From the NCBI GenBank assembly GCA_020184695.1, contig JAANOX010000149.1, forward strand, positions 124,001 to 188,000: DNA of 64,000 nt, read 5' to 3'. Position 1 is the stretch's first letter, and each line of letters starts with the position of its first letter. The notes beneath the pieces were generated by a model, which ran no database searches, was not told the DNA's origin, and was given only the letters and a program-made list of their open reading frames with translations. This stretch comes from Histomonas meleagridis 2922-C6/04-290x (Eukaryota > Protista > Parabasalia). A program made the position numbers and the translations under genes. Of the stretch, positions 2,192 to 26,250 are shown piece by piece.

Positions 2192-4726
2192 ATGGAAGGT
2201 CAGCCCGGAGAAGTCCAAGAACTTGCAGCACGCCTCCATACCGGCGATGCACTCGAGCGAATTGATGCACTCGGCCGTATTGTTTCACTCAATTCCCAAT
2301 CAGTCGATTGCTCATCCGTATATCCCTCGATCCACCATATCACCGAATATTCCCTTGGCGGATACATCAAATCTCGACGTTACGTTGGTATTTTAAACGA
2401 AACATATCTTGAGAAGGCACCAAATATGACGAATACTGTTGTCCAAGGAATTCTTCTCGATTATGAAAAGAACGACCCATTAATTCGTGGTATTGCGGTT
2501 CGTCATGCAGGAAAACTTGCGAACGATGAAACAGTTGAAAAGTTATTACCAATAATATTACGCGGTGCATCATCCGAAGACCCATATGTTCGTAAGGCGT
2601 CAGCGTTTGCGATTCTTAACTTACACCAAACAAAGCCATCATATATCGACAGGTTCAAACTTAGTCCAATCCTTAAAAATCTGGTCGAAGATTCAAATCC
2701 AAACGTTGCAGCTAATGCAGTGTCAGCACTTACAGAGATTAATGAGTCACGTTCAGAACCATTATTTATCCCAACATCGACAACAGTCAATAACTTATTA
2801 GCAGCAATTGATCAAGCTACAGAATGGTCACAAGTTGAGATTTTAGACTTTGTATCGACATACAAACCACAAGATGCATCAGATGCGCGTGGAATTATCG
2901 CTCGTGTCTCATCTCGATTATCACATGTTAATGCAGCTGTTGTTTTATCGGCAATTAAATGCTGTCTACAAATGAATACATTCATTGATGACCAAGCTAA
3001 AGTTCGAGATACATTATCTAAAGTCGTATTACCATTAGTTACATTACTTAACAACAGTGCACCAATCCAATACATCTCTGTTAAATCGATATTGATTTTG
3101 TTACAGAACTATAAGCGAATGTTATCGAGTGAAGTATCGATTTTCTTTTGTAAATATGATGACCCATTATATATGAAATTAGCAAAACTTGACGTCATAT
3201 TAACATTATGTACCACCCAAAACATTGGTAAAGTTCTTGAAGAACTATTTAGTTATGCACAACAAACAGATACTGAATTTGTCCGTAAAAGTATTCGAGC
3301 TATTGGACGTATCGCAGTACAATTTGAATCAGCAGCTAATAGTTGTGTTGATAAACTTGTCGCATTAATTGATATGAGTACCAAACAATCAACGAAACTT
3401 CATTACATTGTTCATGAATGTATTGTTGTAGCAGTTGATATCTTTCGAAGTTATCCAGGTAAATATGAAGGAATTATTGAGAACATTAATAATGCGTTAT
3501 CAGATACAATTGATGATCATCGAGCACGTGCAGCTATGGTCTGGATCTTAGGAGAATATGCAGAAGATATAGGTAATGCTGGTGAATTATTAGATGCATT
3601 ATTCATTGATAACTTTTGTGAGGAAACACCAGATGTACAATTAGCTATACTTACTGCTGTTGTTAAGTATTATTTAGTATCTGAAGATGGTGATGATATG
3701 TTAAGACGTATTATTAATATGGCAACTAATCAAATTGATAATCCTGATGTACGTGATCGAGCATTTATGTACCTTTGGTTAGTATCTGAAGCACCTGATG
3801 ATGCAGCTGATATTATATTAACTAATAGAGAAAACCCACCGAAACTAAATATAGAATTATATTCTATTGATCCTCAACTTGTTAAACAACTTGTACCTCA
3901 AATTGGTACTTTAGCTATATTATATAACAAATTACCATCTGAATTCGTACAAAATACTCGTTTCATATCTATTGATCTTGGTGATAAAGTCGATGATGAA
4001 GAAGGTGGTCTTAGACAAGGTGAAACTTCATTTGATCAAATGTCATTACCTGTTTTGGTTGAAGCTAATAATGCTTATGGTGTAGAAGTCCGTGGTATGT
4101 TATTACGTGTTGGTGATCAAAATTCATTTGTATTACGATTCACAAATTATAGTGAAACACCACTTGAAATGAAGAAGATTGCATTCAATAAGAATATATT
4201 CGGATTTGCTCCTGGTGAATTTACATTACCTCCTTCTGTAAATCCACAGAAAACTTTGACAGTGAATATCCCCGTTGTATTCAGTGAACAACATTTAGAA
4301 GGTGCTCAACCTTCACCTAATATACAAATCGCTGTATTAGTTAATAGAGAAAATCCAATATTCTTCGAAGCACCTGCTAATTTGAACTTAATCCTTGTTC
4401 CTGCTGATCAAGGTGGTAAACTTACAAGAGAACAATTTATGTCTACTTGGCAAGGTATTAGTGATGATAGTGAAATCAATGATGTTGTACAAGGTGCTAG
4501 AATTGATTCTATTGATGTAGCTAAGCATAAGATGCAACAAAATAGATTGTTCTTTATTGCTAAGAAAGAAAACTGTGCTTACTTCTCTGGTAAAACTATT
4601 AAGGGTGAAATATTGATTGTATATATAGTCTTTGAAGAGAATGCAAGATGTACAGTAGGAATTAAGATGTACAACAAGCAAGTTTCATCTGTGATCCTTG
4701 AATTAGTGAAGCAATCAATTCAATAA
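2192..4726 (+). CDS. Adaptor protein complex (AP-1/AP-2) beta subunit, beta-adaptin
   Basis: Adaptin N-terminal HEAT motifs (DPLIRGIA, EDPYVRKAS, DSNPNVAANA, KYDDPLYMKLAKL, NPDVRDRAFMYLWL) and C-terminal appendage. ORF track opens at GTG 2132; first ATG is 2192. Confidence 0.92.
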   Translation: MEGQPGEVQELAARLHTGDALERIDALGRIVSLNSQSVDCSSVYPSIHHITEYSLGGYIKSRRYVGILNETYLEKAPNMTNTVVQGILLDYEKNDPLIRGIAVRHAGKLANDETVEKLLPIILRGASSEDPYVRKASAFAILNLHQTKPSYIDRFKLSPILKNLVEDSNPNVAANAVSALTEINESRSEPLFIPTSTTVNNLLAAIDQATEWSQVEILDFVSTYKPQDASDARGIIARVSSRLSHVNAAVVLSAIKCCLQMNTFIDDQAKVRDTLSKVVLPLVTLLNNSAPIQYISVKSILILLQNYKRMLSSEVSIFFCKYDDPLYMKLAKLDVILTLCTTQNIGKVLEELFSYAQQTDTEFVRKSIRAIGRIAVQFESAANSCVDKLVALIDMSTKQSTKLHYIVHECIVVAVDIFRSYPGKYEGIIENINNALSDTIDDHRARAAMVWILGEYAEDIGNAGELLDALFIDNFCEETPDVQLAILTAVVKYYLVSEDGDDMLRRIINMATNQIDNPDVRDRAFMYLWLVSEAPDDAADIILTNRENPPKLNIELYSIDPQLVKQLVPQIGTLAILYNKLPSEFVQNTRFISIDLGDKVDDEEGGLRQGETSFDQMSLPVLVEANNAYGVEVRGMLLRVGDQNSFVLRFTNYSETPLEMKKIAFNKNIFGFAPGEFTLPPSVNPQKTLTVNIPVVFSEQHLEGAQPSPNIQIAVLVNRENPIFFEAPANLNLILVPADQGGKLTREQFMSTWQGISDDSEINDVVQGARIDSIDVAKHKMQQNRLFFIAKKENCAYFSGKTIKGEILIVYIVFEENARCTVGIKMYNKQVSSVILELVKQSIQ

Positions 4727-4884
4727 ATCAAAAATAACATCAAACTTTCTATACTTTACTTAAATCTTCGTTGGGGTGCCCCAATAACCACTTTCATTTA
4801 ACAGTATAAAATCTTTCAGCGTCATATAAAGTTCAGAAAGTTTTATCGTTTCGAAATGAAAATTTAAAGATAATATTTTAGTAA

Positions 4885-6156
4885 TTACATTTCTTGACTT
4901 TGTAAACTAACCTCTGACCCAATTATGGGTTTCCTGACTGCTACTGGACGAGACATCCTTCGAGGTACTAAATTTGGATTTGGACGACTTAATGTCTTCA
5001 CTTTCATTAATGATCGAACATCCATTTGTGTAGCTGATTGAGATGTTGGAATTGTTTGGCGCTCAACCATCCGCCATTGAGGTAGGCTTTCTCTTTCTTG
5101 TGCCTTAACTTCGCCATTGGGCATCGAAAACAAAAGTCTTCTTCTTGGCTGTGGCTTTCGACACGTCATAAGTTTGTCCTTTAGCTCTTTCATCATTTCT
5201 TTGATTTTTTGTCTCGCAAGTTGTCGATAAAATATTGCAGTATCACATTTATCAAATGGATTAGTCACACCAGTAATGTTAATTCCGGCGTTAGAAATTT
5301 GATCGATGATTTCTTTGTCATTAATTGTGTTATAAACAGAATCAAATTTGAGTTTAAAATCTTCAAGAATAGCATATTCACTTTGTGAAAACCATGCATG
5401 TTCTCGGATGCTGGATAGATTTGGTCTTTTTTCGGGATCTTTTAATAATAATTTCTTTAAAAGATCAGTTAAGGGCGTTGATAAAAAAGGTGGATATTGT
5501 ACTTCGGTATAAACAATCTTTTGAAGTAATCGTTGTGTGTTTTCATCAAAAAATGGTAATTTTCCCGATACTAAAAAATATAGAATTATTCCACAACACC
5601 AAATATCAGAAGCGCTAGTTCTGGAATTATGCTTAATCATCTCAGGGGCCGCATAGGGAGCGGATTTAATGGAATTAATAAAAAGATTATAATTTGAAAT
5701 TCGAATGTGCTTGTTTTGATCAAGATAAATACTTTGAGGATTAAGGACATAATGATAGTTATAATTTTTTTGTTGAAAATATTCAAGTGTTTGGATAATT
5801 TCAGAAAAATATTGACCAGATTCTTCTTCTAATAGACGCCCATTATTGTTAACATAATCATAAAGGGTTCCATTTTCAGAGTATTCTTCAACTAAATAAT
5901 AGTTATTACCATATTCAATACATTCATAAAGATCAGAAATAAAAGGATGGCCCAGAAGTAGAGCGTCTGATATTTCATGAATAAACTGACTTTGCGCGTT
6001 TTCTGTGTCGAATGATTTTGGTATTATTGTGATTAAAACTTTATTTTGAAAAAATTTATTTTGTGCAACCCATTTTGTTGTATTAGAATTATCATTTAGT
6101 GGCATTAGGAAGGTATAATTTTTGATTGTTGTTTTACCAGGAATTATTTGGTCCAT
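4885..6156 (-). CDS. CAMK-family protein kinase-like protein, probably a pseudokinase
   Basis: APYAAPEM, DIWCCGIILY, GKLPF and DPEKRP are present; VAIK, HRD and DFG are replaced (VLITII, HYVLNPQS, ISNYN). Confidence 0.85.
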   Translation of the reverse strand: MDQIIPGKTTIKNYTFLMPLNDNSNTTKWVAQNKFFQNKVLITIIPKSFDTENAQSQFIHEISDALLLGHPFISDLYECIEYGNNYYLVEEYSENGTLYDYVNNNGRLLEEESGQYFSEIIQTLEYFQQKNYNYHYVLNPQSIYLDQNKHIRISNYNLFINSIKSAPYAAPEMIKHNSRTSASDIWCCGIILYFLVSGKLPFFDENTQRLLQKIVYTEVQYPPFLSTPLTDLLKKLLLKDPEKRPNLSSIREHAWFSQSEYAILEDFKLKFDSVYNTINDKEIIDQISNAGINITGVTNPFDKCDTAIFYRQLARQKIKEMMKELKDKLMTCRKPQPRRRLLFSMPNGEVKAQERESLPQWRMVERQTIPTSQSATQMDVRSLMKVKTLSRPNPNLVPRRMSRPVAVRKPIIGSEVSLQSQEM

Positions 6157-10747: not shown

Positions 10748-13060
10748 TTAAACATGTGACCCCTCAATCAGTTTCTCTTCTTCTTCGTTTCTTTTCTTTT
10801 TCAGTATTCTAAACAACGGAATGACCACAGACAATATCATTACAGCGAACAAGAAATATATTGCGAAATGAACGAACACGGTGTACGGCGATTTGTAAGG
10901 TTCGTAAGGTCCTTTTTCCTCTCTCACACCCACTATGATGTACATTGGGTCGAAAGTCTTTCCCACGTGACTTGAAGACGGCGAAATTTCAAGTTTGAAC
11001 TGCATATTCGACGGCGGCTTTCCCGCTTCTTCTATTGAGAAAGTTGCCTCACCAATGTTTCGATCGAATACTCTTCTAATTACCTTATTTGAAGACAATG
11101 ATATAATACTAATACATACTGATGTCGAATATCCATCGTCGATTACATCATTCATATGAATTATCCATCGTAATGTTAAAATCGATTCGTTACTTGGTAT
11201 CATATTATCTTCATAATCCTTTAGCCACATTCGATTCTTAGGTTCATCATTAATATATGTAACATTAATTCGTTGTTGTAAATTACATGGTAATGATTCG
11301 ACAATTAAACTTAACTTAGAATCATTCAAAAAGACACTCGGAACAAATGGTATAGTTAAAGATGTATTATACTTATTAGCATATCCAGGAACTTTAACTC
11401 GATGTGAAAGTCTTGTTTCTCGATCGGATATGTATAATGTTATTGGACATTTTTTAGTGTAATTACTTTTCACAGTGATTCCAGTGGTGAAGTTTTCACA
11501 TGCATGCATAACAAGTTGAGTCTCATTAAAATGAAATGGATCATCTGGATTAACAATTGCTTGGTAAGGATCAGAACCTTCTTTTTGACTTATGATTGAA
11601 GGGTCTGGTGTCCCATCACTATAAAATACTTTTAAGTATGCATTAACTAATAAACCACGTGCGCCACTATCGATCTTAGGGAACATTACAATCCATTCGC
11701 CATTCGCTTTTTCGCCCAAGAATTGATAACTTGGTAACTCTAAATGTGTTATATCGACATTTAAGTCTGACCATTCTGTTAATATCTTTAATTGATATTC
11801 AGTTTGATAATTATCATTAGGACTATACATTGATACAATTAAACTTCCAAAGCCTAAGTCTTTCATGTTTAAGTTTAAGACAAAGCTTAAAATTCGTGGA
11901 TCTTTAACATCGGTAATATTAATTGGTATTGTTATGTTGACTGGCTCTTCTTTTAATTGTATGTTTATGTTAATGTTTTTGGTTGTCTCATAGATATAAA
12001 ATGGTTTTCCAAATGAATAGTTAAGTGATTCTAAGGTGTCAATCGCTTTAAGTGCTTCACTTAAATCTAATCGTCCAAATCCTGTACGACGATTATGATG
12101 AAGTCCAAAAGAATTGGTCCGCCATAACGTAGAGCCAGGATTTACTTTGCATGCAGTCATCGCAGTGATGTACATCATGTCAGTAACGGAGATCTCAGGC
12201 TTACGTTCTAAGATACATGCAAGTCCACCTGCAAAAATGGACGCCGATGCATAGGTATCATAAAATGTGGTGTTAAAACAAGCTGTTTCACTTCGAGGAT
12301 GTGCAGTATATATTGGGGCTATTGGTGAATCATCACTATTTCGTGCTCCGGGACATGACATAAAGAGGCCAGCACCTTCGGCTCCACGATTAAGTGGATC
12401 GCCACGATTGTTAACAGCTGATATGGAAAAGACCATCGGCCATCTTGTGGGCGGTGTGAAGAAAACATCAGTGGTAATGGTACCCGCTGGGACTACAAAG
12501 AATTTTTGATTGGATGAAAGTCCATCTTCTGGATTATAAAGACATTCATCAGCATAATCCGATGGAATTTCATTTGTCGGTATGTATTTGCAAACACGCC
12601 CTTCACAATGGGAATAAATATATTGAATAACACCGATGTGCCAATTTTCAACATGATGACATAAAGTATACTCAAGTGAAACATTTCGTCCTTGAACATT
12701 ATAGAAGTTATATGATGCAACTTTGGCACCTGGAGCTACACCATCTGAATCACAGTAATCATAGCTACCAGCTGCTAAACTAAGGGTTCTTTGCCCAAGA
12801 GTATCATTCTCGGGAAATTTTGGAATAAGTTCAACTAAATTATTGTAAGTTTCTAAAAATTCGTCTTCAATTGCACGCCCTTGATATACATGGTGATAAT
12901 AGTTCGCTCCGTTTGCAATAACATTGATTACAATACCAGTTCCATTTCGATAAAGAGTACTAGTCGGACTGGGATAATTAATATCTTCGCCTGGAATACC
13001 TGCATATTCCCCTGTATTATTGAGCCACCACCTTAAGAAAAGAGAAAAAAAGAGAAACAT
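10748..13060 (-). CDS. Kexin/furin-like subtilase (S8 plus P-domain) type I membrane protein, catalytically degenerate
   Basis: GVAPGAKVAS, VFSISAVNNRG, CPGA, NRRTGFGRLD, P-domain-like GEKANGEW and a C-terminal TM helix; first ATG at 13060 begins a signal-peptide-like segment. Confidence 0.85.
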   Translation of the reverse strand: MFLFFSLFLRWWLNNTGEYAGIPGEDINYPSPTSTLYRNGTGIVINVIANGANYYHHVYQGRAIEDEFLETYNNLVELIPKFPENDTLGQRTLSLAAGSYDYCDSDGVAPGAKVASYNFYNVQGRNVSLEYTLCHHVENWHIGVIQYIYSHCEGRVCKYIPTNEIPSDYADECLYNPEDGLSSNQKFFVVPAGTITTDVFFTPPTRWPMVFSISAVNNRGDPLNRGAEGAGLFMSCPGARNSDDSPIAPIYTAHPRSETACFNTTFYDTYASASIFAGGLACILERKPEISVTDMMYITAMTACKVNPGSTLWRTNSFGLHHNRRTGFGRLDLSEALKAIDTLESLNYSFGKPFYIYETTKNININIQLKEEPVNITIPINITDVKDPRILSFVLNLNMKDLGFGSLIVSMYSPNDNYQTEYQLKILTEWSDLNVDITHLELPSYQFLGEKANGEWIVMFPKIDSGARGLLVNAYLKVFYSDGTPDPSIISQKEGSDPYQAIVNPDDPFHFNETQLVMHACENFTTGITVKSNYTKKCPITLYISDRETRLSHRVKVPGYANKYNTSLTIPFVPSVFLNDSKLSLIVESLPCNLQQRINVTYINDEPKNRMWLKDYEDNMIPSNESILTLRWIIHMNDVIDDGYSTSVCISIISLSSNKVIRRVFDRNIGEATFSIEEAGKPPSNMQFKLEISPSSSHVGKTFDPMYIIVGVREEKGPYEPYKSPYTVFVHFAIYFLFAVMILSVVIPLFRILKKKRNEEEEKLIEGSHV

Positions 13061-13494
13061 TTGAACCAAAAAGTGTCAACTGGTTGAAATTTGTCGTTGT
13101 CTTTTTGTACTCAAAATTTGAATAGTTTATTGGAAAGTTAATAATTATGCAAAATTGTTTATTGTTAGCAGCCGTAACTATATTTGAGAATTGTATTCGT
13201 TGGATATTCATTTGAATCATTAATTGCTTGTATAAACAAACTGATTAGATATATTGTTGACAAAGAGCAAATATAAAATTTAGCCAGTGATTAAGCTATA
13301 AGAGTATATATTTTAATAATCAAATATCGAATGTAAAAATGTAAAATATTTTTTTCATTTAAATTAATAAATTTATTTGAATAATTTTTTAATATTCTCA
13401 AATTTATTTTTGGAAAAATATTGTAAACTTCGACGAAAATAATTAATATGAAGCACTTTTTGTAAATCATATAATTCTAAAGTAGCTAAAAATA

Positions 13495-13878
13495 ATGAAA
13501 AATAAACAATCAAGACTTGAAAATGGTGCATGGACTCCTTCTATAAGAGTTTTATCTATAGAAGTAATGGATGACCTTATTATTAGACCAACTTCATTCG
13601 TGATTTCAGATCCAAGAAATGGCGGCTTAAATACTTTTCAAGGAGTACGAGAAAAAATTTCTAAAAAAAAATACAACAAACTTCTAGATTGGAAGGAAGA
13701 TATGACTAGAATATTTGCAATTGCTAGAACTTCAGGAGATCCGCTTGTTTTAGGAATTTGTGATGATTTTGAAACTAAGTTTCTCAAAAAATATCAAAAG
13801 CTTGAAGCTTTTAGTAATTTCAATTTTAAAGATTCTTTAACAGCTGTTTTGGAAGAACTTCAATCAATTTCCGAATAA
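13495..13878 (+). CDS. Small protein with a divergent bromodomain-like segment
   Basis: TFQGVREKISKKKYNKLLDWKEDMTRIF matches the pattern DLGTIxEKLxxxxYxSxxxWxxDxxLIF; 127-aa ATG-initiated ORF. Confidence 0.55.
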   Translation: MKNKQSRLENGAWTPSIRVLSIEVMDDLIIRPTSFVISDPRNGGLNTFQGVREKISKKKYNKLLDWKEDMTRIFAIARTSGDPLVLGICDDFETKFLKKYQKLEAFSNFNFKDSLTAVLEELQSISE

Positions 13879-14036
13879 GTTTTAAAAATTTAAATGAAAA
13901 TGAACCTTGTAAATAAAGCTATTTAAATTAAATATCATTATTTCACAAATGGATGCTATACCATCTAAAAAAGGATATGAAAATATCATTTTTAATATAT
14001 TTAAAATATAAATTTATTATAAATAAAAAAATGAAA

Positions 14037-14108
14037 GCGTTGCTAGTGTAGTGGTTATCATGCTAGCCTTCCAAGCTTGTGATCCGGGTTCGATTCCCGG
14101 GCAACGCA
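14037..14108 (+). tRNA. tRNA-Gly (anticodon TCC)
   Basis: Acceptor stem GCGTTGC/GCAACGC, D-loop AGTGGTTA, anticodon loop CTTCCAA, T-arm CCGGG-TTCGATT-CCCGG; followed by a T-run (Pol III terminator). Confidence 0.97.
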
Positions 14109-14196
14109 TTTTTTTAAAAATGTATAAGGTTAAGACTTTATAGATCAAACATTAGGGTTTCAGTATCTTGTGGAAACTCATGGCAACCCAATTTTA

Positions 14197-14466
14197 ATGA
14201 ATTCTATTGATCAGATGTTTCGAGAATCTGTTGAATTAGAAAAGCAATATGATAAAAGTGTTGAAGTACATCATGGAAATAAAATAACAGATTCATTAGA
14301 AGAAGATCAATTTTCCAGGGCTGTATATGATGAAATCTCATTTTCTTTATCAGTGATAAAAGCAATGAAAAAAGAAATTAGCGCGATGGAACAGGAAGCA
14401 AAAATAATTGAAAGAAAGAAATTAAAACTCAAGAAAAAAATAAATGAATTAAAAAACAACAGATAA
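14197..14466 (+). CDS. Hypothetical short coiled-coil protein
   Basis: ORF 14170-14466, first ATG at 14197; K/E-rich heptads. Confidence 0.55.
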   Translation: MNSIDQMFRESVELEKQYDKSVEVHHGNKITDSLEEDQFSRAVYDEISFSLSVIKAMKKEISAMEQEAKIIERKKLKLKKKINELKNNR

Positions 14467-14843
14467 TTAAGCACACAAACCTTTCAATAAATGTTTTTTT
14501 TTATTTATTATTATTTTTCATAATAAAAAATCAAGGCAATTTACAATACTATATATTTGTTTTCTTATGATTTTTAAAAAACGAAATGAACATCAGAAAA
14601 TTTCTTTTTCTCATACAAATTAGATAATTGTAAAAAGCCTTAATTATTCTCTTCCTTATTATCCATAGAAAACAATGATATTTATAATTTTTCCAGAATA
14701 AAAATATTTAAATTCATTCTTTTTTATTATTTTATAAAATTGTTTAATCTTAAATCATTTATTAATTTATTAAGCTTAACAAATAATAATAAAATTCGAT
14801 ATATAAACAAAAACAAAAATAACTGAAATGAATTTTCATTAAT

Positions 14844-15962
14844 TTATTCAGGTGAAACGAATTCTCCTGCAAACAAAACAGTTTTATTTTTGTGAACCAA
14901 TTCATATATAAATGGATGGTCTGCTACGAAGAACTTTTCGATTATTTCTGGCAATCCAAGAGTCTCTATCCCTGTTGCAGCTGCTGCCGTAGTTCCTTCT
15001 TCATATACTTCAAGAAAAGCTTTGTGCACTACGCGTGAAATCTTTGGCTTTTGCAGATCGAAAAGCAAACGAATTCCAATCGCTTCGAGCATTTCGCGCA
15101 GGTGTTGTGACTCCCAAAGGCATTTAAACTTGGGAATTACTACATTAATCTTGACTTCGTTAAGGTTTTGGACATATTCTTCGAACTTTTTGGTGCCAAG
15201 TAAACTTTTGAGAGATCGAAATGATTGAAGATCTTTATTCTTAGGAAGAAAGATTAATAAAGAACAATCGTTTACATATGGCAAAGAAATCACTTGGCAA
15301 TCATCATCTTCGAAATATGGGATGGTGAATTGATCTTTCATGAAAGATGTTGTTTTGGTTCCTTCGAATAGATTAAATGGGTAATCCGAAGTCCCTTCTG
15401 GATCAAACTTATTCTGCCATTCGGCTTTGAAATAGATGGCATTGGTAAGAATGATATCAGAATTAGGTTCAACTTCATCTGCTTGAATAAGATTTTGAAT
15501 AAGACCATTGGTGACTTCTGCAACCTTTTGATTTATTAAGCTAATGCCTTCTTGATTAAATTCGATTGGATTAATTTCAATTCCAAGAAATTCAATTAAT
15601 GGTTTGAAAAATTCTGCGTCAAATTCTTTGTTCTTGTTTGGCCAAAGTGTATTTGCGCCACGAATAACTGCATTATTTGTTTTTTGTTCAACTTGTGAAA
15701 TGAGATTTCGAAGATTGGTGAGGATATCTTTTGGAGTAGTATCAGATGGCATTCTGAGAACATCGGAAATTTGTTTTCGTGTTGGATTATTTAGAATTGA
15801 AGCAACCATTAAAAGGATTGCATAAGTTGAATATGGTGAAACAAGAATATTACTTGATTCATCGCAAAGATTTGAAAGCATGGCAATAGAAAGAACCTGT
15901 GTAGGTTCGCTTGGAGTCCCGTAGAAAAGATTTGAAAAGAAGTGTTTTATGTTTGAAATCAT
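14844..15962 (-). CDS. Serpin (serine protease inhibitor)
   Basis: NILVSPYS, ILTNAIYFKAEWQNKF, VVIPKFK, hinge EVYEEGTTAAAAT, FVADHPFIY. Confidence 0.95.
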   Translation of the reverse strand: MISNIKHFFSNLFYGTPSEPTQVLSIAMLSNLCDESSNILVSPYSTYAILLMVASILNNPTRKQISDVLRMPSDTTPKDILTNLRNLISQVEQKTNNAVIRGANTLWPNKNKEFDAEFFKPLIEFLGIEINPIEFNQEGISLINQKVAEVTNGLIQNLIQADEVEPNSDIILTNAIYFKAEWQNKFDPEGTSDYPFNLFEGTKTTSFMKDQFTIPYFEDDDCQVISLPYVNDCSLLIFLPKNKDLQSFRSLKSLLGTKKFEEYVQNLNEVKINVVIPKFKCLWESQHLREMLEAIGIRLLFDLQKPKISRVVHKAFLEVYEEGTTAAAATGIETLGLPEIIEKFFVADHPFIYELVHKNKTVLFAGEFVSPE

Positions 15963-17030: not shown

Positions 17031-18347
17031 AGTATAAATACTACGTAGTAGTGTACGTACAATACATTATAAATTCGTATTATGTTCTATCATATGAAAA
17101 ATCGAATTTCAATATCTACATAATAAATGATAAATCTTATTTTTATATTCCTTATTTAATGTGTATATTTATACTTAGTACATTATATTGACCTTATATG
17201 CTGTTAACGTTCTGAGTGGTGAAAAATATTTATATATATACAAGTATCCGAAGTACAATAGTACTTGAGGTTGTTTATAACAATTCAAGTAGAAATAAAA
17301 AGATAATGAAAAATACATATATGAAAGCTCTTTATAAAAAACTTGGTATAATTTAATAAATATTTAATAAAAAAAGATTATAAGCAAAGCAAATAATATA
17401 TCATATTTTGGATCTGATTTTTGCCAAATGCAAAAATCAAATCCCAGGTTATAAAAAGAAAGTCAATCTTCAATTTTTTCATATTGTTCAAGAACAAAGG
17501 GGTTATAGTCAAATTTTAATAGTAGTACGAATAAAAATCACACAATTATCTTATATCCTTTCCGATAACGAAATCGTCAATGAGGAGATATTGATTTATT
17601 CTAGGATAATATGTAAAATTGATCATTATATATATCATGAACTACAAATAATACCTGTTGCCATATATAAATTGCCGATTCTAATATATTTGAAATCTAA
17701 ATTAAAGACATGAATTAAAAATAAAATAATTAATTCTACAAAATTTGAAATGAATAGCATAAAATAAGATTCAAATTATGGTTTTTTGCTATCAGCAAAA
17801 AACATATCCTAGGTCAAAAATCAGAGTAAATTTACTATTCATGAATTACCTCGCCATTGGTTAACTATCTATTCGTAGTCAAATTTGAATCGAAGAACGA
17901 ACAAAAACCATTCAATCAGTTGAAAAGAAAAAAGACAATAAAAGGAGGATTTTGTCCCATAATATAAGTATCGGGAGAAAATTAATACACAGGATGACTG
18001 ATAATTTTTTAACTGATTTTAAATTATTATGCGAAGGGGGAAAAAGTGCTGTTGAAAAAATTCAATGATAAAAAATTGTTATTCTATTCAAAAAAGTTAT
18101 CGTTAGAAAGTTTTGTATCGTTTGTACCAATATATGCCCGAATGTGCATTCACATATCAAAAATAACTTATATACGACAATTACATGAATATGCCATCAA
18201 TGTATTTGAAATTTTTTGAGTTTATTAATATTTCAGATAGGTTTGAAAAGAATTTAATATCAAGATTTTATATAATTAAATAAAATAAATGATATTTCAT
18301 CATTGCCCAAATAATTTCTGAATTTCTAATTCCTTAATAGATTAAGA

Positions 18348-19180
18348 TATTCTTAGTTTTTTATTAATCAAAGATGCAACTATGTATTTATATATTATAT
18401 ATCCATAATATCAAGATCGTATGAATAACGCCATATACAATTATAATTCGATTTTAAGTTATTGATATCATTCTACATGTTCAAGCGGTTCGAAGTCAAA
18501 TTTGAATGAGTGGACGTATAAAAATCACTCAATCAGCTCGTATCGTTCTCAAAACCGTGGTATTGAATCATATTCGGAAAAATAGAGAAATTAATAATCG
18601 TTATCATCAGAAAAAATGTATCGTTCGTAATAAGATATTTCAAGAATGTGTACTTACACAGAAACTATATAATTGATAATAAATTATTAATCAGGTTAAA
18701 TAAGTACATCATTAAGGTATTACGAGAATTATCACATCATTCATTTTTTCAAAAAATTCATAAATTCAGAAAAATCAAGATTTCATATAAATTTTCGGAA
18801 TAAATAACAAATAACGATTCTATGAAAAAATATCAATATTATTATTATATTTAAACAAACCAAGAATCATTTAATTTGGCTGTTTACAAATCATAATGAT
18901 GCTGACAAATTACAATTGTAATTAATGTGATGTAAATTAATAACGTATCTTTTCGAGGAAATAGTAAAATTTTAATAATATTTACCGTCATTCAAATTCG
19001 CTCCTATCGTCACTTATCGTTACCTCTATCGTTCAACATAAACCATGCAAAAGTAGATTTTTGTCACCTTATGGAATGAAAGAATAAATTTATCTCGTGC
19101 TAATTATGATATTATTCTTAGTTTTTTATTAATCATAGATGTAACTATGTATATATGTTATATATCCATAATATCAAGAT
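18348..19180. repeat. Dispersed ~70-bp direct repeat within a larger decayed duplication
   Basis: 18348-18417 and 19113-19180 are nearly identical (TATTCTTAGTTTTTTATTAATCA...ATCCATAATATCAAGAT); weaker match between ~17875-17925 and ~18490-18540. Confidence 0.75.
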
Positions 19181-19705
19181 GGTAGGTCATCCTACGATGG
19201 GTGAAAATCGCAAGTCGAGTTTAATATATAGGATTAATATTATTAAAACGTTATTTTATAATAATATTAAAAGATGTTTATTCATTTAAATGAAGAACCA
19301 TCCACCCAAACATTAATAATGTATCTCATGGAAGCATTCGTCGAATGCACAGAAATGATAACCATTTTGATTCTTATGCTCTGTTAAGCATTTCAGACAA
19401 AATAAATCACGAATTAGATACTAAAGTTTAGGACTTACAAATCCATCACCCAAAAATGACGAATGCTATGAAACACCAACCAATTACATTAACTTTTTAA
19501 ATAACATGAAAGGAAGAAACATCACATTTGGATGATTTCGTAATTTAGAGATATTGAAGAAAAATGATCAGAAAATACGTTATTTTGGATTAACGTACAA
19601 AAAAGGGTGTAATTTTCTGTGGGCTTTTAACAGGATGCGACCGTTTATGACGACCGTTATAACCTTCTCGACTTTTTTATTGCGATTAAATAGAAAACAT
19701 AGAAG

Positions 19706-19933
19706 ATGGATGCAGAAAAGAAGAGTAGAAAAAAGAAAGTTCATTCTCTATACTACGCAGCGTACGTCCCAGATGAAACACCTGCTACGGAACTTGAACT
19801 TTTAATTCAAAGAACAATGATGGAACAAAAAGGAAAAGACATTTCAACTGAAGGCATTGCCTCAAAAGCATCTGAAGAACAAGTACCACCAAATCAAATT
19901 CCAATAGATCCTTCAATACCTAAAAAAGAATGA
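19706..19933 (+). CDS. Hypothetical 75-aa protein
   Basis: ATG-initiated ORF with GC-elevated, protein-like composition in an AT-rich region. Confidence 0.55.
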   Translation: MDAEKKSRKKKVHSLYYAAYVPDETPATELELLIQRTMMEQKGKDISTEGIASKASEEQVPPNQIPIDPSIPKKE

Positions 19934-20641
19934 ACATTTTTTTTAAAGTATAAATTTAGATATTATTGTTTAAAAAGAATTACATTTTTTTCTCGATCAT
20001 TTTGAACTCATGTTTTCATATATAAAATTGGAATTTTCAAATTTAAAAAGAGATCATAAATTTGTGATTATAATTTAATATGAATTTGAATTTTTTTATG
20101 ATGTGATCATTTTATTTGTGGCTTCTTTCCTTTGCTTTTGGTATAGCTTCCAAACGATAGAACCGAATGAATGAAAAATCATCGGATTTATATTCAAAAA
20201 CTGAAGTGTTTGGGAAACCTTTCTGAAACCACTTTAAAGTGGTTTATGTATTGTCTGTGGGAAATTTTGTTTCCCTCATTAATGATTGAAAAATAGTTAT
20301 ACTATAGCAAGCCACTAAGGCTTAGTGACTGAGCATAGTAAATTTTCGATATTGAGCCCCAATAAGAATTCGGAAACGATAGACATTAATAAATAGATTT
20401 AGTGAAATCAGAATTTACTTTTGACCATCCAAATAGTTACATGTCTTAAATTCAATTTCACTTCAATTAAGTTTATATGCATTTTATTTGTATATTGGAA
20501 TGAGAGAAGGTTCAGACAGAATGAATTAATGTATAGACTAACTATCGATGACTTATATAAGTCCCATTATGGGGCACCCCATTTGATCTTCACTAATCAA
20601 CCGAAAAATATTTGTGAGTTTTATTATTAAAGTGGCATATA

Positions 20642-21871
20642 ATGAAAAATCAAAATATTTTGGAATTAGAGCAAAAAATCCAGAAAATAATTTTTGATTT
20701 AGACAAAGACAATATTAGACAAGCAGCAAAAATAATAATTGACAGTTTTGATGATAATTGTTCAATATCTTTTAATATAGTTATTAGTTATTTTATATTT
20801 TTAGCAGTTGTTTTACAAATGAATAAATTTGATATATATTTAAATTTAATGAAAGAAATTGAAAAATACGAAAAAAACGAACCCAAAATATTTGAATATT
20901 TTATTCATACTCTTCTTAAAAATAACATAAAAGAATCACATTATCTTCTTGAAATTATGGTCGAACAAAATCTGATTGATATAAGTCGTCTCTGGAGAAT
21001 TATTAAGATAAAAAAAGAACCATACTTTGTTCAATACATGTCAAAAAAAGATATAAATACATATAAAAATTATGTAAATAATCTCTATCGAAAACAAATC
21101 ATTGAAAATTATGAAGAACTTTCAAAGAATGATTGGGAAGTTCATAAAAAATTAATTAAAGAAGGACATAATCCAAATGAAATTGCGAAAATAATTCGAA
21201 ATGATGAAATTGAAAAACTTCAAGAAATATCATCACAAACAAATTTTGATTTTAATCAAAGAATTGCACCATCACTTTATGAAAGATGTTCATTTATTAA
21301 TGAAGAAAATGTTACATTAATTGATTATGCAGCATTTTTTTCTTCAATTAAATGTTTTAAATATTTACTTATGAATGGTGCAAAAGTAGAAAACACAGGT
21401 GAATATGCAGTTGCAGGAGGAAATGAAGAAATCATTCATTTGTGTGAACAAAATCATTCAACATTTGAAGATGCATATGAAACAGCAATTGAATTTCATC
21501 GAAATGATATCTTTAAATATTTTTATGAGAATAAAATAAAGAAAATTGATAGATTGAAAGAATTAGGAAATGAATGTGTTTTATATAATAATTATGAAAT
21601 TTTTTCATATTTAATAAAAGAAGGAATGAAGATCAATAGAAATATAATTAATACTTCTGCTAAAATTGGCGATTTATATCTTGTTAAATATTTCCTACAA
21701 AACAACAAAATTCCAAAGAATATATTAATTATTTCAGCACAATCAGACAATATTGAACTTGTTAAATATATATTAGAATTAAAAGTAATAGATATAAATG
21801 ATGTTTGTTTATTTTATTTAATATTTATTTTAATAATTTTGGAATTCAAAATAATTTTTGATTTTTATTAA
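20642..21871 (+). CDS. Ankyrin-repeat protein, N-terminal part (trichomonad DUF3447-like domain); frame ends inside the first spacer
   Basis: TLIDYAAFFSSIKCFKYLLMNGA, YAVAGGNEEIIHLC, AIEFHRNDIFKYF, then ankyrin-like helices ending DIND. Confidence 0.85.
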   Translation: MKNQNILELEQKIQKIIFDLDKDNIRQAAKIIIDSFDDNCSISFNIVISYFIFLAVVLQMNKFDIYLNLMKEIEKYEKNEPKIFEYFIHTLLKNNIKESHYLLEIMVEQNLIDISRLWRIIKIKKEPYFVQYMSKKDINTYKNYVNNLYRKQIIENYEELSKNDWEVHKKLIKEGHNPNEIAKIIRNDEIEKLQEISSQTNFDFNQRIAPSLYERCSFINEENVTLIDYAAFFSSIKCFKYLLMNGAKVENTGEYAVAGGNEEIIHLCEQNHSTFEDAYETAIEFHRNDIFKYFYENKIKKIDRLKELGNECVLYNNYEIFSYLIKEGMKINRNIINTSAKIGDLYLVKYFLQNNKIPKNILIISAQSDNIELVKYILELKVIDINDVCLFYLIFILIILEFKIIFDFY

Positions 21872-24087
21872 ATGTATTTGAGACAGCACTTATAACTGCA
21901 TCTAAATGTGGCAACTTAGAAATCGTTAAATTACTTCTTGAACAAGAAGGAATTGATATTAATGTAAAGGATAATTATATTTGTTTTAATAATTTGAAAT
22001 TTCAAAATAATATTTGGAAATTATTTCAATTATTTCAAACAGCACTTATTGGAGCATCTGAAAATGGTAATACAGAAATTGTTAAATTACTTCTTGAACA
22101 AGAAGGAATTGATATTAATGCTAAAGATATAAATCTTTTTTATTTGGAATTTATTTTAATAATTTTATATTTTAAAATAGTATATAAAAATTATTTAAAT
22201 TATTTTGGACTGCACTTATGTATGCAATTTATAATCGTCATAGTGAAATAGTAATATTACTTCTTGAGCAAAAAGGAATTGATTTAAATAAAGGATTTGA
22301 TATTTTTAAACAAATTTTAGAAATATAACAAAATATTTCAATCTCTTATTCTTGCATCTACATGGGGTGAAACTGACGTAGCGGAATTACTTCTTAAAAA
22401 AGGCGGATTTGATATTAATATTTGTTTTATTTGATGTTTATTTTAAGAATTTTGGAATTCAAAAAAATATTTGGAAATTATTTAAATTATTATGGACACC
22501 ACTTATGTATGCAACTGTAAATAGACATACAGAAATCGTTAAATTACTTCTTGAATACGAAGGAATTGATATTAATGCTAAAGATAGTTTTTGTTTTAAT
22601 AATTTTGGATTTCAAAATAATATTTGGAAATTATTTAAAATATTTAAAACAGCACTTATTAAAGCATCTGTAAAAGGTCATATAGAAATTGTTAATTTAC
22701 TTCTTGAACAAAAAGGAATTGATATTAATGCTAAAGATAATATTTATTTTAATAATTTAATATTTCAAAATAATATTTGGAAATTATTTAAATCATTTGA
22801 AACAGCACTTATATTAGCATCTTCAGAAGGTCAAACAGAAATCGTTAAATTACTTCTTGAACAAGAAGGAATTGATATTAATGTTAAATCTATTCATTAA
22901 TTTTATTTAATATTTGTCATAATAATTTTGTAATTCAATATAATATTTGGAAATTATATTAAATGTTTAAAACGGCATTTATGTTCGAAATAGAAAAAGG
23001 GATTATAGAAATAGTTAAATTCCTTATCGAACAAGATATTGATATCACTGATAAAACTATTTAATGATTTTATTTAAAATTTATTTCGATAATTTAATAT
23101 ATATTAATAACAATTGGAATTTGTTGAATATATATGAAACTGCACTTATTTTAGCAACTGTTAATGGTCAAAACGAAATATTTAAATTACTTTTAAACCA
23201 AAAAAGAATCGATATTAATGCTAAAGATATTAACATATTTTATTTTGTATTTGTTTTATTAGTTTTATGTTTCATAATAATATTTGGAAATTCTTCAAAA
23301 GATTTAATACAGCACTTATTTATGCATCTATTTTAGGCGATACTGAAATCGTTAAATTACTTCTTGAACAAGAAGAAATTAATATTAATGCCAAAAATAT
23401 TGAATCTTTAATATTAATTTTTGTTTTTATTTTTTGATATTCGAAAATATTTATTAAAATTTTCATAAATTATTTCAAACAGCTCTTATTTGGGCATCTG
23501 AAGAAGGTCATTTAGATATCGTAAAATTATTTCTTGCGCAAAAAGGAATTAATGTTAATGTAAAAGACATATATTCATTTTATTATATATTTATTTAAAT
23601 ATTCCATAATTTTAACGAAAATATTGGAAATTATTTGAATTATTTTGGACAGCACTGATGTATGCAGCTTCAAATGGTTATGTGGAGATAGTTAAGTTAC
23701 TTCTTGAGCAAAAAGATATTGACATTAATGTCCAAAACATTAATTTATTAAATTTGTAGTTTATCTCAATGATTTTGGATTTTAAAACAATAATTGGAAA
23801 TTATTCAAATTATTTTGGTCCGCGTTAATGTATGCTGTTTCAAATTGTTACATAAAAATAGTAGAATTACTTCTTGAACAAAAAGGAATTGATATGAATG
23901 CGAAAAATAATTATTTGTTATATTTGATATTTATTTAATTAATATAATACTTTACAATAATATTTGGAAATTATTAGAATAACATAAAACAGCATTCACA
24001 TATGCGTTTGAAAATGGTTACACAGAAATAGTTAAATTGCTTCTTGAAAAAGAAAGAATTGATATCAATGCTAAAGATAATCAATAA
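21803..24087 (+). repeat. Array of 14 ankyrin modules (about 90 nt each) separated by AT-rich spacers; dominant period 170 bp
   Basis: TALxxAxxxGxxEIVKLLLEQxGIDINAKD modules start at 21883, 22039, 22209, ~22341, 22496, 22649, 22802, 22972, 23139, 23309, 23479, 23649, 23819 and 23989; final stop TAA at 24085-24087. Confidence 0.92.
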
Positions 24088-24399
24088 ATAGAGATTGTAC
24101 TTTATTTAATAGACTTTTTCGTGAGTAGGTAGTGATTTTGTAAATGATATGGTCTGTTCGGAAATTCCTTCTCGACGTTTGGAAAATAATCATTTCACAA
24201 GAAACCAGTAATTTAAATAAAGTTAAAACCGTTTCATTGCTTTTTCTTTTTTAAATTTCTCGGAGAATTAATTTGTTTTCGGAAATATTGATACAAAAAA
24301 TTAACTAAAGGAAAACAAAGGCTTTCGGAAAAAATTATTTTATATATATTTTATCTTTCGCATGAATATCAATTTTTGTTCTAGAAGCAATTTAGCTAT

Positions 24400-24780
24400 G
24401 TCAAAATAATATTCGGGTTGAATTATATAAAGCATTACCTATGAATTCATCCTCATGTTGTCACACAGACACATTTAAATAACTTCTTGAATCAGAAAAA
24501 ATTGATGTTAATTAGAAGATAACATTTCAATATTTTATTTAATATTTTATAACAATATTTGAATTAAATTAATCTGCAGATTTTACCTTTTTCTCTTATG
24601 TAAAACAAACCTCAACTTCCAATAGTAAATAGTTAAATTCGCCTTTAACAACAAATCATCAAACATCATTTCACATCACATGTCCGATCCATTTTTCATC
24701 ATTTTATAAAACAATTTCTTCGGAAGTCACACAGAAAAAATCAAAGAATTGATGTTAATGTTAGTGATGTTATTTGGAGA
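24400..24780 (+). pseudogene. Decayed ankyrin-module remnants downstream of the array
   Basis: CTTCTTGAATCAGAAAAAATTGATGTTAAT (~24483) and GAATTGATGTTAATG (~24746) resemble module ends, with spacer-like AT-rich DNA; stops present. Confidence 0.45.
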
Positions 24781-24791
24781 TCATTTAAAGT

Positions 24792-26009
24792 TTAGTGACT
24801 ACGAGCAGCGTGAACAGCCTTTTCGCCAGCCTCTGTAAGGTTGCTAGCGGGGATGATTGGGAGGCCTGATTCCCTAAGCAACTTCTTGCCAAGTTCAACG
24901 TTTGTGCCTTCGAGTCTCACAACGAGTGGAATCTTGAGTCCGACCTTCTTCACAGCAGCGATGACGCCCTTCGCGATCATGTCGCACTTAACAATGCCAC
25001 CGAAGATGTTGACGAGAATTGCCTTCACCTTTGGGTTCGAGCTGATGATAAGGAATCCTTCAGTGACCGCCTTTTCGGAAGCAGCGCCACCGAGGTCGAG
25101 GAAGTTGGCTGGATCGCCTCCGGATAGTTTGATGACGTCCATTGTAGCCATTGCGAGACCAGCGCCATTAACAAGACATGCGATATCACCATCAAGTTGG
25201 ACATAGTTGAGGCCATACTTCTCCGCACGGAGTTCCATTGGGTTAACTTGTTTAAGGTCGCGATAGCTGAAGATTTCCTTTTGACGATAATGGGCGGAAT
25301 CATCAAAGTTGAATTTGGAGTCAACTGTGATGATACGGCCGTCAACTGTTTCGGCAAGTGGGTTAACTTCGACTTGTGTGGCATCTGAACCGACAAATAA
25401 TTTCCAAAGTTTTTGCATTTCTTCAACACCACTTTGATATGCAGCACCTTGGAGGCCGAGCTTCTTTGCAAGGCGCTTAGCAACGTCTTCTGTGATGCCA
25501 TCAACACCATCAAGAACTTCCTTGAAGATTGCATTTGGTTGTTTCTTGGCAACTTCTTCGATTTCAACACCACCTTGTGTTGAGGCGATGACAACTGGGG
25601 CTTGTGAAGCACGGTCAAGAAGGATTGCGAAATATAATTCACGCTTGATTTCAACTGGGTCAGAAAGCATGACACACTTACAGAGAGCACCTTCTTTTGT
25701 TGTTTGCTTTGTGCGAAGATGTCTGCCGATCATTTTGGAGGCAACTTGTTTAGCTTCTTCGGCTGATTTGACGAAATGAACACCTGACTTGAAGCCATCT
25801 TCAACCCATGTGCCTTTGCCACGACCACCAGCATAAACTTGAGCCTTTACGACAACTGCTGGAAGACCAATCTTCTTGAATGCTTCTGCGGCTTCATCTG
25901 GTGTGAAGGCAACTTGGTTAATACCGGCAGAGACATCGAACTTCTTGCAGATTTCCTTGGATTGGTATTCGAGGATATTGAACTTGCGTGAGAAGCTTGT
26001 TGAAAGCAT
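24792..26009 (-). CDS. Hydrogenosomal succinyl-CoA synthetase beta subunit
   Basis: Presequence MLSTSFSRK then FNILEYQSK; VVKAQVYAGGRGKG, LVNGAGLAMATMD, PANFLDLGG, VNIFGGIVKCD, VVRLEGTN; strongly biased codons. Confidence 0.97.
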   Translation of the reverse strand: MLSTSFSRKFNILEYQSKEICKKFDVSAGINQVAFTPDEAAEAFKKIGLPAVVVKAQVYAGGRGKGTWVEDGFKSGVHFVKSAEEAKQVASKMIGRHLRTKQTTKEGALCKCVMLSDPVEIKRELYFAILLDRASQAPVVIASTQGGVEIEEVAKKQPNAIFKEVLDGVDGITEDVAKRLAKKLGLQGAAYQSGVEEMQKLWKLFVGSDATQVEVNPLAETVDGRIITVDSKFNFDDSAHYRQKEIFSYRDLKQVNPMELRAEKYGLNYVQLDGDIACLVNGAGLAMATMDVIKLSGGDPANFLDLGGAASEKAVTEGFLIISSNPKVKAILVNIFGGIVKCDMIAKGVIAAVKKVGLKIPLVVRLEGTNVELGKKLLRESGLPIIPASNLTEAGEKAVHAARSH

Positions 26010-26013
26010 CTAA

Positions 26014-26019
26014 AAGTGA
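26014..26019 (-). promoter_or_regulatory. Initiator (Inr) element TCACTT upstream of SCS-beta
   Basis: TCACTT on the minus strand 4 nt before the ATG at 26009. Confidence 0.65.
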
Positions 26020-26250
26020 AGTGATCACCTCTCTTTCAAAATTGATTAAAACCGCTACAATAGTTCTTTTGGGGCACCTCAACTATCGTTTTGCAATGTT
26101 CGAGCTCCAAAAACATGTGTCGAAGTAAAAGTTTTGGAATATCAAATCAAGAATCGTTTTACAGAAGTGGAGGAATCAACATTCAAAAAAAATCGTTAAT
26201 CATTATTCATTAAAAAATTGATTGGCCTTCAGAAATTTATTATTCAGATC

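Follow-up and report, generated by a model that had tools for sequence, protein, structure and literature searches.

The 64,000-nucleotide stretch of Histomonas meleagridis DNA analysed here (contig JAANOX010000149.1, positions 124,001 to 188,000 of the forward strand; referred to below as the window and numbered from its first base) has a composition of 30% G+C and contains long uninterrupted open reading frames (ORFs). On its plus strand, at 20642–24087, lies a gene with a DUF3447/ankyrin head and 14 further ankyrin repeats, each preceded by a short spacer. The gene starts with the ATG at 20642 and, in the unprocessed sequence, the ORF stops at 21871 after 409 codons. The first 387 codons (20642–21802), a segment in which zero-mismatch RNA contigs are found, encode a unique N-terminal region, DUF3447 and two to three uninterrupted ankyrin repeats (PF11929, 2.1e-10; PF12796, 3.4e-11). 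The closest named relatives of this head are H. meleagridis proteins with 52–62% identity. Matches to Pfam Ank and Ank_2 together with DUF3447 place the gene in the trichomonad DUF3447 ankyrin-repeat family, with cores 5–7 of the array matching PF00023 at 9.4e-26. It would seem probable that this is one working gene for an 860-residue DUF3447-ankyrin protein, and that its message loses 51 short elements, of which 50 are 17 nt long and one 13 nt, at the RNA level with the single codons between them being kept.

The 14 ankyrin cores (21883–24078, plus strand) are of 30 codons each, match positions 3–32 of the 33 in the Pfam Ank model and read T-A-L ... A-K-D. They start at 21883, 22039, 22209, 22339, 22496, 22649, 22802, 22972, 23139, 23309, 23479, 23649, 23819 and 23989, giving an anchor spacing of 156, 170, 130, 157, 153, 153, 170 and 167 nt and then 170 nt five times. 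Repeats 3–5 (22209–22495) are atypical, core 3 ending ...GIDLN-KGF and not ...INAKD. The cores diverge from their consensus at 6–34 of 90 positions and none of the 14 contains a stop. When the observed differences were placed randomly with the local A+T bias, the 14 cores together received 13.4 stops on average, and every one of 5000 simulations contained at least one stop. A preliminary description of this stretch had proposed the dN/dS of the cores as a check, a value of about 1 being expected of a neutral 170-bp satellite; pooled over the cores it is about 0.5. The cores are under purifying selection. Since they are diverged, free of stops and show this ratio despite the frame-breaking spacers (the frame is broken by nine spacers of 80 nt and by two irregular ones), the array is translated now or was until very recently.

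Besides the nine spacers of 80 nt, the window has spacers of 66, 40/43, 67/76, 63 and 63 nt. The 14 stop-free cores, the truncation at 21871, the nine 80-nt spacers (from 21803, 22129, 22892, 23059, 23229, 23399, 23569, 23739 and 23909), the in-frame stops at 23062 and 23980, and the absence of GT and AG from the spacer at 23569–23648 had all been reported in the preliminary description and were recovered on recounting. A set of 54 spacers was assembled from the window and two other H. meleagridis loci (L003 and L004), and here too, where the same length mode had been proposed as a check, 80 nt (23 cases) and 63 nt (9 cases) predominate, with a few spacers at 83, 66, 86, 40, 26, 23 and 9 nt. 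These lengths fit 17k+3m. If each spacer is divided, starting at the 3' end with a codon, into alternating codons and 17-nt stretches, 80 nt is 4x(17+3), 63 nt is 3+3x(17+3), and 83 and 66 nt are the same with one codon more; 40 nt corresponds to two units and 26 and 23 nt to one unit plus codons. The 80-nt form is the 63-nt form with 17 nt added at its 5' side, the shortest spacers hold one unit of 17–20 nt, and the presence or absence of single units is precise, both between 80 and 63 nt and in the spacers of 26, 23 and 40 nt. A shortest-path test with free skips found a path at any skip length, by skipping through cores.

The codons left between the 17-nt elements were compared over 44 regular spacers, drawn from metagenome relatives as well as from the window and the two other H. 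meleagridis loci. In 30 of them the third single codon (−23 to −21) is glycine, GGA or GGT; the two codons preceding it are rich in Asn, Asp and Lys, with K, W, E, R or Q as the last codon. Of 170 single codons one is a stop, against about 17 expected at this composition. Shifting the register by 1 to 9 nt in either direction abolishes the glycine and N/D/K signals, and only register 0 shows both. Read in order, these codons give x-x-G-x, as in the canonical ankyrin beta-hairpin, and the conserved GG 24 nt upstream of each core is explained by the Gly codon of this hairpin. Judged from the sequence, the single codons are under coding constraint. The spacers had previously been called non-coding; they are indeed conserved in length and break the frame, though 17-nt elements alternate in them with single codons and they are not uniformly non-coding. 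Likewise, of the two removals suggested earlier, 68 or 71 nt, the first (giving 34 residues) is right, as is the end of the array at the TAA at 24085, with the 68 nt being made up as 4x17 and not as one unit.

Deletion of the 51 elements leaves 2583 nt, a multiple of three, and restores an ORF of 860 residues from the ATG at 20642 to the TAA at 24085–24087, with 14 repeats of 31–35 residues each. What is retained falls into one segment of 1161 nt, 14 of 81–102 nt, each consisting of a core and its preceding codon, and 37 of exactly 3 nt. The restored hairpins are given here in their order along the gene, with all spacers on the plus strand. Spacer 1 (21803–21882, 80 nt) has elements at 21803–21819, 21823–21839, 21843–21859 and 21863–21879, the first of which begins GTTT, and codons AAT TGG GAT GAG (NWDE). 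Spacer 2 (21973–22038, 66 nt) opens with AAT TAT and continues with elements at 21979–21995, 21999–22015 and 22019–22035 and codons GAA GGA CAA, giving the linker NYEGQ. In spacer 3 (22129–22208, 80 nt) the elements lie at 22129–22145, 22149–22165, 22169–22185 and 22189–22205 and the codons are GGA TAT AAA TGG (GYKW). The atypical spacer 4 (22299–22341) has two elements only and reads GAT, 22302–22318, AGA, 22322–22338, CAA (DRQ); both of its elements begin A(T/A)T and finish TTT. Spacer 5 (22420–22495) begins with the only element of the gene that is not of 17 nt, the 13-nt element at 22420–22432, followed by those at 22436–22452, 22456–22472 and 22476–22492, with codons GAT TGG GGA TGG (DWGW). 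If the 13-nt element is retained the reading frame is lost downstream.

Spacers 6 and 7 are of 63 nt and in frame when unprocessed. Spacer 6 (22586–22648) has AGT and elements at 22589–22605, 22609–22625 and 22629–22645 (SWGK), and spacer 7 (22739–22801) has AAT and elements at 22742–22758, 22762–22778 and 22782–22798 (NNGE). A 163-residue ORF at 22409–22900 reads through both of them with strong Pfam Ank matches, and could be mistaken by automatic annotation for a separate small gene with 21-residue inserts. That the 63-nt spacers are translated loops was considered and rejected, as many of those elsewhere carry in-frame stops and have the same element build.

The remaining seven spacers are all of 80 nt with four elements. 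These are, for spacer 8 (22892–22971; NCGK), 22892–22908, 22912–22928, 22932–22948 and 22952–22968; for spacer 9 (23059–23138; KNGE), 23059–23075, 23079–23095, 23099–23115 and 23119–23135; for spacer 10 (23229–23308; CYGN), 23229–23245, 23249–23265, 23269–23285 and 23289–23305; for spacer 11 (23399–23478; NDKQ), 23399–23415, 23419–23435, 23439–23455 and 23459–23475; for spacer 12 (23569–23648; YIGW), in which both GT and AG are absent, 23569–23585, 23589–23605, 23609–23625 and 23629–23645; for spacer 13 (23739–23818; VWGW), 23739–23755, 23759–23775, 23779–23795 and 23799–23815; and for spacer 14 (23909–23988; DNGK), 23909–23925, 23929–23945, 23949–23965 and 23969–23985.

The sequence of the elements themselves was examined over 156 of them. 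At position 1, 61% have A, 24% G and 14% T; T occupies positions 2–4 in 73–91% and positions 15–17 in 76–87%, and A is common at positions 11 (68%) and 14 (69%). The consensus is ATTTATTTAAATTATTT, such that elements begin A/G-TTT and finish ATTT, and those of the window are 93% A+T. An AT start is seen in 70 of the 156 and a GT start in 34 (4 of 50 in the window), the final two bases are TT in 106 and 87% end in T. GT..AG ends occur in none, in agreement with the preliminary description, and sliding the cut to equivalent positions gives canonical GT..AG ends in no case, TA..TA being unattainable for most elements. The trichomonad ACTAAC branch motif fused to the 3' site (RCTAACACAYAG / TCTAAC..AACAG), also reported missing earlier, is absent from the element consensus, and the motif scan of the window gave one match, at chance level and outside the gene. 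Nor do the elements have the U12-type 5' sequence RTATCCTT or a branch site TCCTTAAC 10–15 nt from the 3' end: the consensus, RTTTATTT...AAATTATTT, is without C's, and the only trait common to elements and U12-type introns is the A or G at position 1. RNAalifold on 24 aligned 80-nt spacers with their flanks gave no consensus structure (energy 0.0), and no bulge-helix-bulge was found there; an Rfam scan of the window returned only a tRNA. Two other placements of the 3' boundary were tried and rejected, an AT..AC intron with the AC of the Thr codon as its 3' end and a 3' site at ACAG|CA, which resembles the trichomonad AACAG. Both break the frame and contradict the RNA pieces that include the preceding codon.

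For RNA, we used the Logan contigs of four runs (X1–X4) from one 2023 study of the same organism. The share of array 31-mers (21803–24087, sampled) held by these is 0.39, 0.38, 0.31 and 0.28, as against 0.88 and 0.83 in DNA runs; were the RNA to hold the 93-nt segments only, a share of 14x63/2255 = 0.39 would be expected. Over 20600–24200, run X1 holds 0.55 of the 31-mers, with the head and cores alone accounting for about 0.55–0.60. When contigs were placed over 20400–26100 there was heavy cross-mapping from paralogues, and zero-mismatch pieces on unique sequence were used. In the head these are 20673–21133 and 21502–21802, the latter ending exactly at 21802 in three runs. In the array one piece covers 23136–23228, beginning exactly at 23136 in run X1 and ending exactly at 23228, and another covers 23476–23568 in three runs, with 46–54 letters before it and 82–101 after it that disagree with the adjacent spacers. 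The 3' end of the gene and the intergenic region are spanned by a piece of 811 nt (24051–24861). Zero mismatches over unique coding and intergenic sequence exclude strain divergence as the cause of the missing spacers. A contig of run X2, covering 23096–23228, has its first base at the start of the second single codon of spacer 9 and continues through the two final elements of that spacer, still present in it, into core 9. A de Bruijn contig should start where molecules with and without the preceding element coexist, and this single contig therefore suggests a partly processed form and hints at removal in the 5' to 3' direction. All six contig limits (21802, 23096, 23136, 23228, 23476 and 23568) coincide with those that the 17+3 model predicts from the sequence. 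By the 31-mer shares and the contig limits, the elements are thus indirectly seen to be removed from mature RNA, as spliceosomal introns would be.

The summed contig word depth over the conserved cores at 21900–23400 reaches 10^5–10^6, with hundreds of paralogous ankyrin transcripts having 31-mers in common, and because of this sharing the depth there is uninformative for this gene. An exact search of Joint Genome Institute (JGI) metagenome contigs with a single predicted junction gave no match, which is uninformative. A protein search with the last 100 residues of the head likewise gave no match, in a database that appears to be without proteins from the RNA runs. No gene product on record corresponds exactly to the 409-residue ORF.

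Removal at the RNA level is the only reading that fits both the contrast between DNA and RNA and the contig limits. Of the mechanisms raised in the preliminary description it is the one that stands, and the selection for precise removal that had been proposed is supported by the purifying selection on the cores and by the presence of spacers in the DNA runs but not in the RNA-run contigs. Ribosomal bypass, in which the spacers would stay in the messenger RNA (mRNA) and the ribosome would hop or frameshift over each element, could account for the fixed element length and for inserts that break the frame of a downstream ORF which is itself intact. It is nevertheless very improbable: spacer 31-mers are missing from the RNA-run contigs, which join cores to non-spacer sequence, take-off codon and final 3 nt of the element agree in only 2 of 156 cases, a stop at the start of an element is never seen and the 24 aligned spacers have no conserved hairpin. 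We give just as little weight to excision from the DNA of expressing cells in the manner of ciliate internal eliminated sequences, even though the elements are short, A+T-rich, precisely bounded and inside coding sequence, given that the DNA runs of the cultured organism retain most of the array 31-mers and that TA..TA boundaries are lacking. Also counted against it, to our knowledge no split between germline and soma has been described in parabasalids.

A different RNA-level reading is that the whole spacer of 77–80 nt (60 nt in the short form) is one non-canonical intron, leaving repeats of 30–31 residues, with the inner x-x-G codons as relics. The contig limits 21802, 23136, 23228, 23476 and 23568 would be limits of such an intron as well and the 31-mer shares fit it equally well. 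The length steps of 17 and 20 nt, on the other hand, are not needed by a single intron, nor is the precise gain or loss of single units, and, in the face of mutation biased towards A+T, diverged arrays and relatives still have the GG of the Gly codon and avoid stops among the inner codons. The X2 contig, moreover, starts exactly at the inner codon at 23096. The letters that follow 21802 in three contigs also bear on this. There are 75 of them, which do not fit the spacer and correspond to 12 linker and 63 core letters, stopping at 21945, ahead of the first 31-mer common to cores 1 and 7; a direct join would run to 21954, entering the sequence common to these cores by 6 nt, and a de Bruijn contig should stop earlier (these positions were compared by eye and not computed). 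The direct join of 93-nt segments, giving 31-residue repeats, was accordingly ranked below the model with single codons, the contig limits alone not separating the two, and we regard the single intron as unlikely.

The same 17+3 build is found in the same genome at L003 and L004 and in the metagenome relatives L001, L002, L006 and L008. Locus L003 has two further arrays, an intact one at 17455–20833 with about 20 intact cores and, adjoining it, a decaying one of the same build at 12516–15829, in which 4 of about 22 cores have stops or frameshifts and which could serve as a neutral control. The heads of the metagenome relatives are 44–53% identical, their spacers are 4x(17+3) or 3+3x(17+3) and their hairpins read KYGK, NSGR, HFGN, HEGR, YDGK and HDGS (KYGK and HDGS parsed by eye). 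GT starts (GTTTAT, GTATTA, GTATAA) are commoner in the diverged arrays and the metagenome relatives. No isolated 17-nt element splitting another ORF was found in the window or in L003–L005, about 114 kb in total; within these, as far as seen, the elements occur in ankyrin hairpins only, having multiplied along with the repeats.

This distribution is relevant to the suggestion that the array, as a tandem repeat, is dead or dying, with the RNA contigs coming from a separate spacer-less copy, such as a retrocopy, that has identical cores. The family is indeed very large and cross-maps heavily, uninterrupted linkers are abundant among the RNA contigs and the decaying array at L003 indicates that decay does occur. 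Such a copy, however, would have to be identical over both the unique head and the unique cores matched by the zero-mismatch pieces, the diverged cores of this array have no stops where 13 are expected, and both other loci and other organisms have intact arrays of the same build. Were the copy a retrocopy, its existence would already imply loss of the spacers from RNA. We find this suggestion improbable, more so than that of a single intron.

In the annotation of GCA_020186115.1 there is no gene call over the array (L005:4219–7218, equivalent to about 21795–24791 of the window) or over 10 kb of similar arrays (L003:11267–21266), and annotated H. meleagridis relatives (P0004, P0007) end inside the first spacer. 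As a result, a large ankyrin family of this pathogen of poultry is missing from the protein set or truncated in it. The H. meleagridis genome paper gives at most one intron per gene (PMC8529796).

The window holds further genes upstream of the array. A tRNA lies at 14037–14108, a serpin-family ORF at 14844–15962 on the minus strand (PF00079, 1.4e-73) and a subtilase-like ORF at 10748–13069, also on the minus strand. The succinyl-CoA synthetase beta gene of the window is identical to one on WSYJ01000156.1 (H. meleagridis GCA_020186115.1). On the metagenome contig L006, an ORF for an IS1595-family DDE transposase (4380–5279) is found 2.3 kb from the ankyrin gene; this contig is probably from a different species, since its flanks are much less A+T-rich than Histomonas DNA.

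Taking the removal of the 51 elements as the preferred reading, every spacer-preceded ankyrin repeat would have elements between the codons of its beta-hairpin linker, in runs of up to four and with one kept codon after each element, and the mature message would read D/N - x - x - G - x - T-A-L. All inner single codons would be retained in the RNA and removal would proceed element by element from 5' to 3', as the one partly processed contig suggests. Candidate machinery is the spliceosome acting on degenerate, size-constrained micro-introns that derive from the short (type B) introns of trichomonads, or else a cut-and-ligate activity of another kind that measures 17 nt; the balance between the two appears roughly even. 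A spliceosomal origin is favoured by the intron-like 5' motif of the G-starting elements, the A-rich positions 11 and 14, a narrow size range as in Stentor, the placement strictly between codons and the precise presence or absence of single units, which resembles intron gain and loss. Against it we count the A at position 1, the T in last place, the lack of AG, the 3-nt exons and the weakness of the signals. A tentative proposal, held with clearly less confidence than the preferred reading as a whole, is that a non-spliceosomal RNA system cuts out and ligates across the 17-nt units sequentially from 5' to 3', with the removable units alternating with the individual codons of the hairpin x-x-G-x. 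Possibly, too, the elements represent a very small self-propagating insert with codon boundaries as its target.

Several observations weigh against the preferred reading. One element is of 13 nt, and about one fifth of the spacers at the other loci are irregular in length. In a genome of 70% A+T, A/G-TTT ... ATTT are weak end signals that leave the specificity unexplained. Neither an A at position 1 nor a T in place of G at the last position is known to allow spliceosomal catalysis, and the same goes for 3-nt exons between 17-nt introns. The runs consist of Logan contigs labelled 'RNA?' and not of raw reads, and no sequence spanning a junction was read for this gene, the contig joints among the matches listed being all from paralogues. 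Retention of the inner codons consequently rests on the coding constraint, the contig from 23096 and the 75 letters after 21802.

Comparison with known systems shows likenesses to several of them. The introns of Trichomonas vaginalis number 63, all GT..AG with extended motifs, the shortest being 23 nt, with no more than one per transcript (PMC12316389). The type B short introns of T. vaginalis and T. stableri are of 23–28 nt with GT..AG ends and a fused TCTAAC..AACAG, and there are at most two per T. stableri transcript (PMC12316389). They come from the same phylum, are similarly very short and A+T-rich, and their 5' motif, GTWYWD followed by T's (PMC12316389), resembles the Histomonas elements that start with G (GTTTAT, GTATTA, GTATAA). 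In contrast, the 156 Histomonas elements lack both GT..AG ends and the fused motif, mostly starting with A and ending in T, and a single gene has 51 of them, up to four in a row and 3 nt apart. The introns of Stentor coeruleus are of 15 or 16 nt with GU..AG ends and a branch A at position 10 or 11, and are found in all kinds of genes between normal flanking exons (PMC9505925). The Histomonas elements are like these in their extreme shortness, high A+U, narrow length range (50 of the 51 in the window being of 17 nt) and an A-rich position located just a few bases before the 3' end, and unlike them in their non-canonical ends, in their confinement to ankyrin hairpins over the DNA scanned and in their single-codon exons; taken as a branch-point signal, A at positions 11 and 14 reaches only 68–69%. 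Non-canonical nuclear introns are known in euglenids, diplonemids and the tunicate Fritillaria (PMC12621601). Introns of this sort too are removed from RNA without GT..AG ends and have spread as families of similar sequence, whereas they are longer and often end-paired or transposon-derived, the Histomonas unit being of 17 nt with no consensus pairing.

Programmed translational bypassing, exemplified by T4 gene 60 and the byps of Magnusiomyces yeast mitochondria, involves elements that are not removed from the mRNA and depend on a match between take-off and landing codons. These are likewise short, fixed-size, frame-breaking inserts in an otherwise intact ORF, but the Histomonas inserts are absent from RNA contigs and their codons do not match. 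Animal micro-exons and recursive splicing offer retained segments down to 3 nt and stepwise removal, with long canonical flanking introns; in Histomonas the retained segments would also be as short as 3 nt and removal would be stepwise, whereas the flanking elements are of 17 nt and non-canonical. We know of no description of runs of 3-nt exons between 17-nt introns, and full-text literature searches found no published description of these elements. Filters that require canonical motifs at splice junctions (PMC12316389) would by design drop such events, and the family concerned is an under-annotated one in a parasite of poultry. If confirmed, the elements would either widen the limits of what the spliceosome can recognise and handle or reveal a different RNA excision activity. 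They would then rank just behind the 15/16-nt introns of Stentor among the shortest intervening sequences in nuclear genes, and would be the first such runs with single-codon exons and without the GT..AG ends or branch motif thought to be required for trichomonad splicing.

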